NCBI GenBank assembly: GCA_020536535.1
Contig: JAHLWZ010000811.1
Coordinates: 1 to 64,000, forward strand
DNA: 64,000 nucleotides
DNA from: Pelomyxa schiedti
Taxonomy: Eukaryota > Protista > Evosea
Direction of reading: 5' to 3'
Shown: piece by piece, positions 51,080-57,649 of the stretch
Position numbering within the stretch: the first letter of the stretch is position 1
Layout of the letters: each line of letters opens with the position of its first letter
Translations under genes and position numbers: made by a program
The notes under the pieces: generated by a model
Told to the model about the DNA's origin: nothing
What the model saw: the letters and a program-made list of their open reading frames with translations, nothing else
Databases searched by the model: none

Positions 51080-51909
51080 GGGTCACGTTTCTTTACCTGA
51101 AATTTGGGTTTTCTCTAAGCAGACTGAGGGGGCAAGAAGCAGTCGAAGGCTTTCCGTCAAAGTCAACCCTGAAAGGTTCCGGCACATGTGAATCGTGATC
51201 AAGGGGGTACACCGCTGAGCCGTTGTGGAAACTGGATTTTTTTCTTTGTTGGGCCAAGCCCCTCATGACGAACAGGAAGAGAAAGGACATAACCGCACCA
51301 AGTTCGTGATTTGCGCAACTAAAGACCAGCCGATGCGCAGACATGGAAGCTAACTAAAGTTGCACTTGAGCCCACCCGACCTCCCTAAAAGCCATCTGAG
51401 ATTGCCCGGAAGGAAATGTGGCACCGTACCCATCCATACCGGGAAGGCAGGGATCTCTCGCACGCCGAGAAAATCCTCGAAGTTCGGAATTTCGCGCGAA
51501 CCGAGACGGAAAACACAAAAAAAATACACAAAGGCAACATCAAAAACAACAACCGCGCACAACACCCGTGAGGTTCCGCGCCAAAAAAAACATCAAAACA
51601 GCACTCCAAAGCGAAACACCAGAATTATTATAATCCCACTGCATAAATCCACCACCCACAACAACAAACAACAACATACACCTCCCAACGCCTCCAACCA
51701 CCGCCAACCATAAAAAACCAAGAAACCAAACCCCCCAAACCAATTTTTTTTTTTTTTTCAAGACGCATCCACACCCCCAGTCCACCGAATTTGCACCAGG
51801 GCCCATATCTGGGTCCTGTCCAATCCCCACATCCTCTGGTTCATCTCCTCCGCCTCCTCCTATTCAGCAACAACAAACCCAATCTCAGCAACAGCAGCAG
51901 GCAATTACA

Positions 51910-53473
51910 ATGACCTCCACAATTACTGTAACTACTACAACAACTACTACTACTTCCAGTACCACTACGGACAGCACCATCCCTGTTGATAATGTTCAAG
52001 GCATTCAGGCTACAGACACGACCTCTACGACTTCCTCTTCTACTATTGGAACTGCTCCTCCTCCTCCTTCTTGTGCCTCGCAGAATGTCACAGCACAGTC
52101 CGCCTCGTGCTTTCCAGTTTCCGTGTATACCTCGGACTCTTCCTCGGGGTCTACAGTTGCAATCAGATCGTCCTTTTCGGAGCCTGAAGACTGGCCCGCT
52201 TGGTTCCCAAAGTCGGCTTCCGAGAGGTTGCTGTCCAAGGTGCAGACACATAGGCACAGACACTCCACTAGCTCTTCTCGTTCTCACACTACTACTACAA
52301 CAAATTCACAAACCTCTAGTTCGTCCACTACTGCAACTCCCAATTCTCCCTCGCACTCACACTCCTCATCACACAGCTCGTCCTCTCGAAGTTCTTCTTC
52401 GCATGGGTCACCATCTTCCTCTTCACACACTTCGTCCTCTCACTCATCACATTCAACCTCTTCAACAACCACTCCCTCACACTCCTCGGCTTCCCCTACA
52501 TCAGCTTCCCATTCTTCAGCATCATCCCACAGCAGTGGCAAACACCATTCGCATCACCGGTCCTCACACGGCCCCTCACATGGGCCAGCGCGGCCTGCTG
52601 ATTTCGCACGCCGCATGTTTGGGGATGACAAAGGCACCCCTAATGTATCTGTAGAATGGTATCTGGGGCGCATTGTGCAATATAGTGGCTCTACCTTCTC
52701 CTCTATGGTGGCATCCGTAGTGCTCATAGAGCGTGCTTTGGACTCTAACCCCGATTTCCGGCTGACCAATGGAAACATACACCGTGTTGTACTCGCAAGG
52801 TATGCAAATTTAACCCACCACAAACTAGATTTAACTCTCTTCTCGCAGTGTCCTGATCAGCTCAAAGTTCTTTGAAGACCAGTTCTACCCCAACTCTTAC
52901 TATGCACGAGTAGGGGGTGTCAGTGACCAGGAAATGAACGAACTTGAGCTGGCCTTTCTAGCCCTCGTCCGCTTTGATCTGTATATCACCACAGCCCAGT
53001 TTTGCATCTACGAACGAGAGCTCACCAGCAGCCCCGACCTCAGCTCTGGTGCAACTTCCACCCCACCGCCGTCCCCGTCAACGCCTCCGCCCACGTCACC
53101 CCCAGCACATGATGATGATGACGAACCCCCACCGGGAGACCAGAATCAGAATCACCATCCAAACCCAGATCAGAATCAGAATCAGGATCAGAACCAGGAT
53201 CAGGACCAGACGCAGAACCCACCGCACTATCACGATCATGACCACCACAGCCACAACCGCAACCACAGCCATAGCCACAACCATAGCAGCAGTAATACCC
53301 GCAACCACACCACAGACACCAGCACGAGCGTAAGTTCTGTTGGTGATTGTTCAGCAAGAACCAGTTGTTTGATGGCCACCTGTGGTGACACATGCTTTGG
53401 TCATACAGTGGTCCCTCAACCTTCATCCTCAAGAGGGGCACACAGTGTAATAACTTATCTAAATGTTAATTGA
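51910..53473 (+). CDS. Pho80/PCL-type (CYCU/P) cyclin
   Basis: PNVSVEWYLGRIVQY, LTNGNIHRVVLA..SSKFFEDQFYPNSYYARVGG..EMNELELAFLALVRFDL form a Pho80-family cyclin box. One intron; long Ser/Thr/His-rich flanks. Confidence 0.9.
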
Positions 53474-55886: not shown

Positions 55887-56144
55887 CCCCCTTTTCTGTT
55901 TTTTGGCGAAATTGGCAAGCACTTCTTGATTGTCGTTATTGGTTTGTCGAGTGCCTGAACGAGCCAGCTCAAAGACCCATCTACACAACGGAGCAGAGAG
56001 AGAGCCCCTCAGAGATTCGATATTCCATCTCCCCGGAGGTCGTGTCCGCCTAGGAAAGAGAAGAAGAAATGCAGAGAAGTCCCACAATCCCGAATAAGAG
56101 AAAATCGGTGCTACTATTCGGCTCCGGTCGAGGAGAATTTTTCC

Positions 56145-56675
56145 GAGGAGTACTTGGCTTTCTTAAACCGAGCTCAAATGCAGTCACGGTTATCCAAAAT
56201 AATACCTATCCAATCAACTTGCAATCCAGATTTTCCCCAGAACCTTCCGGGTAGGTTTCGGCTCTCTCCCTTGAGGTCTGAATCGAAATCTATCCACTAT
56301 GGAGGGCCTGGGGCTCGAGGGCCAGGGGGAGCCTGGTCTCTCAGTTTAATTTCCAGTCTGGAAAGTCCTGAGGGGGCGCCTCAGAACTTCCAGATCACAT
56401 TCCAGAAGTAGGGGGAAACCCAAGGGGGCTCCTTGGGTTGTGGTCCTCCTCAAAATTTGTAGCAGGACAGTAACAGGGGGAGCCTGAGCTGACCTGCTCA
56501 CTCTTCAAAGGGAAAATTTCCACTTGACTAAAAGCGAGCGGGATCACCGCGAAGTTCCCTGCCCCCAACTCCCATCCCCGGGAGGTGGGGCATTTCAGGG
56601 AGGCGCGGCCCCGCCCCACTGTTCCGTGTTGTTCAGCCTCTGGGTTGGAAGGTTGAGTACTCCTCATTTTTTTTT
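56145..56675 (+). ncRNA. Candidate structured non-coding RNA (~520 nt) with terminal long-range stem and oligo-T terminator; family unassigned
   Basis: 56145-56162 pairs with 56648-56665 over 18 bp, including G-U pairs that form only on the + strand. T9 at 56667-56675, many internal hairpins, and no credible ORF in an unusually long intergenic spacer. Confidence 0.55.
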
Positions 56676-56833: not shown

Positions 56834-57649
56834 TCATATTCCACCAGATCCAACTTGGGCAAAGTTTGTGTGGCCAGTCTTTGAGGCATGGTCAATGGCA
56901 CCCTTCTGTCCCACAAGTCCAGAGCCACACACAAGGCACTGTAAGTCAAACTTGGATGTGTCTGTGAACTTGCGGGCCGATTTCTCCCTCGCCATGAATG
57001 CACGAACCTGAGCTTCAGTAGATTCAGCTTCGCGGCCGCGCCGCGGAAATACTGTCACATCACACTCCTCAGGTGCTCCTTGTTCTAAGCACAGTGCCAG
57101 AGCGTCATAGTGTATGCCGTCATAGATCTGAAGTTGGTTGGTGTGGATGTGATTTGGGGGATTATGGGATAACTCACAATGTAGGCTATGTCATTGTATC
57201 CTTCTGATTCCCCAAAGGGGACGATTTGACTTGATTGAATGTCGCATACAGCAATGACTGTGTGATAGTGCTTGCATAGAATAGAAAGTTCAATGGCTCC
57301 TCCCCAGCTGTCAGCCATCTAATCTAATTCGTAAGTCCAAGTGTGCTTCAATAGGTAGCTCCAACAAAGAAAAAAAGGGTTCTACCAGAATCCACATTGT
57401 GTAGTCTTCAGGTTGTTTCCCCAAAAATGCTTCATTGTAAGTTTCCGGGTCATTAAACACGGTCTCGGCAATCAAATGCCTCAGTCTATCCACTTCACTT
57501 CGAGAGTGGCCTCCAAGAACATACCTAAATTGGCACGCAAACACAACACAAAAAACAAATGAGCACCATGGATCCCAACATGACACAAACCCTACAGCAT
57601 TGAACAGACAACCATTGTCCGCAGGTATCACTCGACGCACCACGCTCAT
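56834..57649 (-). CDS. OTU1: OTU1/YOD1-type deubiquitinase with C-terminal C2H2 zinc finger
   Basis: RRVIPADNGCLF (catalytic Cys), SWGGAIEL, YDGIHYD (catalytic His), LQCLVCGSGLVGQKGAIDHASKTGHTNF. Confidence 0.92.

Follow-up and report, generated by a model that had tools for sequence, protein, structure and literature searches.

A candidate family of large structured RNAs with repeated G-loop hairpins in the archamoeba Pelomyxa schiedti

Introduction

Several RNA polymerase III (Pol III) products are scaffold RNAs with a terminal closing stem, among them Y RNA, vault RNA, 7SK and SRP RNA, the last including the 522-nt yeast scR1. To our knowledge, few Pol III products exceed 500 nt and are at the same time strongly conserved in structure, and nearly every known case is a housekeeping RNA such as SRP, RNase P or MRP RNA. 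Multivalent protein-binding RNAs of a design comparable to the one proposed here are the bacterial CsrB/RsmZ RNAs and the repeated motifs of 7SK, and exposed G-rich loops in general are commonly bound by proteins of the zinc-knuckle or qRRM type. In Dictyostelium, Pol II and Pol III genes for noncoding RNAs have an element known as the Dictyostelium upstream sequence element (DUSE), some 60 nt ahead of the gene start, and the authors of that work did not expect the element to be conserved outside Dictyostelia (PMC7919456).

Here we describe an RNA gene found in a 64,000-nt stretch of the Pelomyxa schiedti genome (the window). The gene combines a DUSE-type box, a 5'-3' closing stem and a terminal T-run with an array of hairpins that present the same kind of G-rich loop, and it belongs to an undescribed RNA family with at least four diverged copies in this genome; the family may be larger, with distant members. 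The literature on noncoding RNAs of Pelomyxa, Archamoebae or Entamoeba contained nothing on such an RNA.

Results

The locus in the window

The window copy (copy A; Table 1) is a complete promoter-to-terminator gene model for a noncoding RNA of about 521 nt, flanked by two minus-strand genes that encode OTU1 and an MFS transporter. The first-pass annotation had proposed an unannotated structured RNA gene on the plus strand here, in a spacer that it described as GC-rich; the GC content is indeed 0.52-0.57 around the RNA gene, against about 0.40-0.45 in neighbouring sequence. Every feature that it listed is present in the sequence at the position it gave. The closing stem, described as 18 bp with four G-U pairs (56145-56162 with 56648-56665), exists as such and extends to 19 contiguous pairs (56145-56163 with 56647-56665), with five G-U pairs over all 19. 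The T9 run said to follow it directly is also there (56667-56675), but an intervening A at 56666 separates the two. Four of the listed internal hairpins (56320-56338, 56357-56394, 56419-56437 and 56461-56498) are real and constitute the G-loop array described below.

Two other elements fare differently when the paralogs are considered. A second long-range helix with a bulged U, likened to P4 of RNase P (56273-56282 with 56632-56640), can form in copy A, but its 5' arm is conserved in no paralog, which makes it a chance feature; the 3' strand pairs instead with the invariant GAGCU of the terminal rod. Similarly, the CR-I-like GGAAAGUCC at 56360 is present, but it lies in the variable outer stem arm of hairpin 2 and is not found in the paralogs.

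Table 1. Coordinates of the RNA gene, its parts, its paralogs and other loci discussed in the text
Feature	Coordinates	Strand	Length	Parts, evidence or remarks
Gene model, copy A	window 56080-56675	+		promoter to terminator
DUSE-type promoter box TCCCACAATCCC	window 56080-56091	+		starts at -65 from first closing-stem base; at -65 in 4/4 paralogs
Terminal rod, 5' strand	window 56145-56189	+		RNAalifold and pair counts, compensatory pairs; P1a 56145-56163, P1b 56165-56174, invariant internal loop CAAAU 56175-56179, P1c 56180-56189
G-poor segment	window 56190-56249	+		predicted unpaired, two UAUCC(A) motifs; composition, alignment
Hairpin module 1	window 56310-56348	+		core stem-loop 56319-56339; pentaloop GGGAG 56327-56331; paralog stems differ and still pair
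Hairpin module 2	window 56355-56396	+		core 56368-56384; pentaloop GGGCG 56374-56378; core-stem U-A to A-U change; outer stem includes GGAAAGUCC
Hairpin module 3	window 56410-56450	+		core 56417-56439; pentaloop GGGCU 56426-56430
Hairpin module 4	window 56463-56498	+		core 56474-56486; pentaloop GGGAG 56478-56482; outer stem 56463-67/56494-98
Long irregular 3' hairpin	window 56540-56617	+		5' arm C-rich, 3' arm G-rich; six pairs changed on both sides
Terminal rod, 3' strand	window 56624-56665	+		RNAalifold and pair counts
Pol III-type terminator	window 56666-56675	+		A + T9; T-run after rod in all four paralogs
OTU1 C-terminal zinc finger	window 56837-57058	-
Negative GC-skew stretch	window 51500-53450			strong skew (to -0.65)
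Low-complexity ORF	window 52934-53473			rich in His, Asn, Gln, Asp, Pro and Ser; inside the negative-skew stretch
Copy A	window 56145-56665	+	521 nt	A + T9
Copy B	C1061:10612-11128	+	517 nt	T7
Copy C	C854:48634-49164	-	531 nt	A + T6
Copy D	C815:61266-61858	+	593 nt	A + T10
Segment of copies B and C lacking in copy A	window 56518-56540 against L003:1870-1905 and matching part of copy C		15-19 nt	CCAUCACCUUCUGAA
Inverted element near copy C	L002:1430-1451 (C854:48556-48577)	+	22 nt	family 3' end + T-run, 1 mismatch
RNase P RNA gene	C676:50003-50354			91 bits; same 12-mer as TCCCACAATCCC at about -69; 3' flank T8
RNase MRP RNA gene	C811:110023-110515	-	493 nt	81 bits; DUSE at -64; 3' flank T11; internal T4 tolerated
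U6 genes				DUSE at -66 in 2/3, at -54 in third; 3' flank T8-10
U2 genes (4 checked)				DUSE at -59 to -64 in 3/4; 3' flank A-rich, without T-run
SRP RNA genes L011, L012, L013	C455, C794, C817			DUSE-like CCCATAAGTAT 18-23 nt before start of Rfam match, not ~65
TERT-like gene	C931:32777-33290; C931:35196-35301	-		Telomerase_RBD 30-32 bits, two exons; U6 gene about 2 kb away
Short (GGGATT)n array	C1969:907-972			about 11 other loci

Diverged paralogs in the same genome

We searched the P. schiedti genome (52,367,397 bases in 5337 contigs; the published assembly is given as 52.4 Mb in 5337 scaffolds, PMC8887013) for relatives of the locus. BLAST returned two copies that have their 5' and 3' ends in common with copy A at 81-86% identity, and the 26-mer GAGCUCAAAUGCAGUCACGGUUAUCC, allowing up to three mismatches, occurs in exactly three copies (A, B and C). 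A fourth and more distant copy, D, was recovered by a 3'-end pattern search; matches to that pattern on contigs C354, C4437 and C837 are without the features of the family and were taken as chance. Among the paralogs, the DUSE box and the T-run bound the conserved region, beyond which the DNA is unalignable on either side, and identity is 81-93% in the rod and 24-69% in the interior. Copy A is without a short segment, common to copies B and C, that lies between hairpin 4 and the 3' hairpin.

Two metagenome scans gave no homolog from outside P. schiedti. In one, a degenerate 26-mer based on the invariant rod strand had 0 matches. In the other, a three-module hairpin pattern matched at least 120 stretches; among the matches listed, about 80% were near-identical tandem repeats, none had hairpin stems in variable context and none resembled the family. 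The covariation evidence presented below is consequently drawn from four paralogs of one genome.

About 50 nt downstream of copy C lies an inverted 22-nt element that, tail-to-tail with the 3' end of that copy, makes a palindrome of about 90 nt. The element may be what is left of a fifth copy, or it may act as a two-way terminator, and the palindrome accounts for weak miRNA-like Rfam matches there.

Pairing, covariation and strand

Taken alone, the closing stem is no more than chance: each strand of the window has roughly 15-20 runs of at least 16 contiguous Watson-Crick or G-U pairs at spans of 300-800 nt. The single-sequence fold of copy A has a z-score of -4.9 on the plus strand and -3.9 on the minus strand. 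The judgement that the structured RNA is real comes from the paralogs, through their pairing and compensatory changes, and not from the stem by itself.

In the alignment of copies A, B and C, 91.1% of 384 paired cells form pairs. Both sides have changed in 23 pairs, against 10.6 +/- 2.2 in shuffled alignments (0/500 shuffles reach 23), and sliding the partners by 1-3 columns leaves only 3-9 such pairs. The alignment fold has a z-score, by column shuffle, of -11.1 on the plus strand and -8.3 on the minus strand. Since G-U cells number 60 against 10 A-C cells, and the consensus energy is lower on the plus strand (-128.5 versus -102.1 kcal/mol), the RNA strand is assigned as plus. Paralogs, covariation, strand bias and T-runs all support the proposed plus-strand gene with its closing stem and Pol III-type terminator, and we consider it very probable that these loci form a genuine family of plus-strand RNA genes.

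These data also bear on a foldback or MITE-type non-autonomous transposon, the terminal inverted repeats (TIRs) of which would mimic a closing stem. Such an element would have 18-19-bp terminal inverted repeats in several copies, as seen here, and could have left the inverted copy of the 3' end beside copy C. However, only four copies were found in 52 Mb and none has target-site duplications, whereas many dispersed copies with such duplications had been named in advance as the mark of a transposon. Conservation moreover continues for 65 nt outside the left 'TIR', as far as a promoter box whose distance is constant, mismatches in the stems are strand-biased towards G-U as counted above, and the internal hairpins covary. 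We regard a transposon origin as highly improbable.

A protein-coding reading is unlikely: from copy to copy the longest ORF changes strand and frame, and indels come in lengths not divisible by three.

A terminal rod with an invariant internal loop

RNAalifold, applied to copies A, B and C, pairs the 5' and 3' ends into a terminal rod of about 38 bp that consists of P1a (19 bp), P1b (8-10 bp), an internal loop CAAAU/UC and P1c (9 bp with one bulged U). The rod encloses, in order, a G-poor stretch, the hairpin array and a long covarying 3' hairpin. Two near-invariant blocks, GAGCUCAAAUGC.GUCA.GGUU on the 5' strand and CCGUGUUGUUCA..CUC on the 3' strand, are found in all four copies and together make the internal-loop region. 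The loop itself, with GAGCUCAAAUGC on its 5' side and GUUGUUCA..CUC on its 3' side, is invariant in all four, and positions 56166-56197 and 56623-56641 are identical across copies A, B and C.

Pairing in the rod is kept through compensatory change at columns 8, 13, 16, 17, 18 and 22 of alignment A4. Column 8 has A-U, A.C and G-C, column 16 has U-A and C-G, and column 17 has U-G, U-A and A-U; at columns 13, 18 and 22, both sides are changed once copy D is added. Copy D contributes compensatory changes from A-U to G-C, from U-A to C-G and from U-G to A-U.

The stretch between the rod and the array is 50-60 nt long, contains 4-11% G and is predicted to be unpaired in all copies. UAUCCA occurs in it twice in copies A, B and C, at variable spacing, and is absent from copy D. 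A segment that is predicted to be unpaired in every copy could, like the G loops, pair with another cellular RNA and make the molecule a trans-acting antisense or guide RNA. We think this unlikely, as the segment is only 36-43% identical between paralogs and a crude RNA-RNA duplex screen against the genome's own U2, U6, RNase P, MRP and SRP RNAs found no complementarity above the shuffled background, bar one marginal value.

Four G-loop hairpins on variable stems

In each of copies A, B and C, exactly four hairpins carry a pentaloop GGG(A/C)(G/U); they stand at matching positions (about 170-181, 211-228, 264-280 and 317-332), spaced 41-54 nt apart. The stems are closed by G-C, G-C and then usually A-U. 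Below this closure the lower stems vary in sequence among copies while pairing is kept, and a second, outer stem under each hairpin completes bipartite modules of 36-42 nt, joined by linkers that are not conserved. Copy D has three canonical modules together with degenerate ones, so that 'four' is not universal in the family.

The module motif is specific to the four-copy family. A two-module pattern had eight matches genome-wide, seven of them in the family, against two for a reversed control; in the 64-kb window, the single-module pattern matched five times on the plus strand (4/5 in the RNA gene) and never on the minus strand. A loop that stays constant while its stems vary, recurring four times at even intervals, points to a multivalent protein-binding design.

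Regular spacing of about 50 nt and self-contained bipartite hairpins would also suit a precursor made by Pol III and then cleaved to give four hairpin RNAs of about 50 nt, or small RNAs from a rod long enough for an RNase III-type enzyme, the full-length molecule not being the working form. Against this, the rod is conserved in sequence and not only in pairing, the linkers between modules are not conserved, and we recognised no processing signals. The invariant internal loop of the rod points to recognition of the intact molecule, and processing into small RNAs is, in our judgement, quite unlikely.

Promoter, terminator and polymerase

A box [AT]CCCA[CT]AA starts exactly at -65 in all four paralogs, as TCCCACAATCCC in copies A and C, TCCCATAATCCC in B and ACCCACAA in D; the interval from box to stem shows little other conservation and is gap-free. 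Transcription of copy A probably starts at or near 56145. After the rod, each copy has a T-run (Table 1), and copies A, B and C contain no internal T-run of five or more, T4 runs being present.

The same arrangement is seen at other P. schiedti genes for small RNAs. RNase P, MRP and U6 genes have the box and a T-run; U2 genes have the box and an A-rich 3' flank. Thus the T-run separates Pol III from Pol II genes in this genome and places the four-hairpin family in the Pol III class. As the DUSE serves both polymerases, it is the T-run and not the box that carries this assignment, and we consider transcription by Pol III probable. The published P. schiedti transcriptome was generated by poly(A)-primed Smart-seq2 (PMC8887013). 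Four ORFs inside the RNA, looked up as a possible sign of expression, had no entry in the protein collection.

Matches above Rfam cut-offs number at least 32 for U2 and at least 20 for U6 genome-wide (including L155-L162). The A-rich element of the U2 genes lies 8-25 nt downstream, in place of a T-run, and is possibly a Pol II 3' box. In three SRP RNA genes, the short distance between the DUSE-like box and the Rfam match implies either a 5' extension of SRP RNA by about 40 nt or a different promoter arrangement.

Comparison with known RNA families

The first-pass annotation had suggested a divergent RNase P or MRP RNA, another housekeeping RNA such as SRP or telomerase RNA, or a new class. At gathering score, Rfam gave no match on the RNA gene in a search of the whole window; at E<=10, copies A, B and C gave only scattered miRNA and lncRNA noise, with nothing recurring between copies. 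The models for nuclear RNase P (RF00009) and RNase MRP (RF00030) found nothing at either setting, and those for Y RNA, vault RNA and 7SK found nothing in copies A, B and C at E<=10.

The RNase P/MRP proposal does have points in its favour, in that the gene has the promoter and terminator layout of the genome's RNase P and MRP genes, a closing stem and, in copy A, the CR-I-like GGAAAGUCC. However, canonical RNase P and MRP RNA genes are found elsewhere (Table 1), and neither GGAAAGUCC nor the bulged-U helix occurs in the paralogs. SRP RNA is likewise accounted for, by five canonical genes of about 280 nt above the cut-off and a sixth just below it, and the SRP models do not match the candidate. 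With six SRP RNAs, RNase P and MRP all in place and no Rfam match at gathering score or, for copies A, B and C, at E<=10, a divergent member of any of these three is next to impossible, and a new RNA class is the best fit among the options originally listed. The MRP RNA gene lies on the same contig, 54 kb beyond the four-hairpin RNA gene.

Telomerase RNA is an unlikely identity as well. On this reading, the rod would be the core-enclosing helix and template boundary, and the single-stranded UUAUCCAA after it the template. A TERT-like gene is present (Table 1), no telomerase RNA is known for P. schiedti, and the conserved unpaired stretch directly follows a conserved helix. Set against these points are the four diverged gene copies, repeat-like strings that are not the same from copy to copy (periods 16, 7 and 9) and that copy D does not have, and the lack of any match of at least 8 nt to templates of four common types (TTAGGG, TTTAGGG, TTGGGG and GGGATT). 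Overall we hold this specific arrangement to be very improbable. Short (GGGATT)n arrays are several times commoner in the genome than (TTAGGG)n arrays, of which there are three; all of these are short and interstitial, and neither repeat was seen as a long terminal array.

Discussion

The best overall explanation, which we hold to be slightly more likely than not, is that these genes make up a new orphan family of Pol III RNAs that serve as multivalent RNP scaffolds or sponges. In such a scheme, the DUSE at -65 would drive transcription and the T-run would end it. The four-hairpin RNA would then be a stable RNP scaffold or sponge, in which one G-loop-recognising protein would occupy the four G loops, either as four copies or as two dimers; a second factor would bind the invariant rod loop, and La would bind the U tail. 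The scaffold or sponge role taken by itself is tentative, its entire basis being the repeated invariant loops on variable stems. A more specific version is somewhat doubtful: a new class of large (520-590 nt), archamoeba-specific Pol III RNA in which the four invariant GGG loops act together. They might make up a tetravalent trap for a G-loop-binding regulator and so titrate it, as a eukaryotic counterpart of CsrB/RsmZ or 7SK, or might each give one G-tract to an inter-hairpin G-quadruplex core that bundles the modules.

If expressed, the family would represent an undescribed abundant RNP of an anaerobic amoeba, in a lineage that includes Entamoeba, and the four-hairpin RNA would be a convenient bait for its protein partner. 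Its four precisely spaced boxes add to the evidence that the Dictyostelium DUSE system operates in Archamoebae.

Y, vault, 7SK and SRP RNAs resemble the Pelomyxa RNA in several respects: the promoter is external or of the Pol III kind, the 5' and 3' ends pair into a closing helix, a U tail is present, and the loops that proteins bind are conserved whereas the stems vary. The Pelomyxa RNA does not match their Rfam models, and at 520-590 nt it is about as large as Pol III products get; we know of none among these RNAs that has four repeated G-rich pentaloop hairpins. The bacterial CsrB/RsmZ sponge RNAs offer a parallel in another respect, as they too have several hairpins whose stems vary but whose short G-rich loop is the same each time (GGA in those RNAs, GGGNN in the Pelomyxa RNA), followed by a terminator; this is how a multivalent protein sponge is designed. 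They bind CsrA/RsmE, which eukaryotes lack, and they are without a rod domain; the likeness is one of analogy and does not imply homology.

Closer in promoter are the DUSE-controlled noncoding RNA genes of Dictyostelia, which have the same box [AT]CCCA[CT]AA about 60 nt upstream and, in many cases, a T-run downstream (PMC7919456). Their Class I RNAs also have a 5'-3' terminal stem, yet measure 42-65 nt against 517-593 nt, carry an 11-nt motif and differ in architecture, with no common sequence, and their hosts are Dictyostelia rather than an archamoeba (PMC7919456). In gene layout the likeness is with the RNase P, MRP and U6 genes of P. schiedti itself, which have the same promoter box, spacings of -64 to -69 and terminators of T8-T11. 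Unlike RNase P and MRP RNAs, which have one match each in the genome, the four-hairpin family is multi-copy and diverged and has neither a CR-I/CR-V/P4 core nor an Rfam match. SRP, RNase P and MRP RNAs are thus all accounted for elsewhere, yet a further family of four genes has their promoter and terminator layout.
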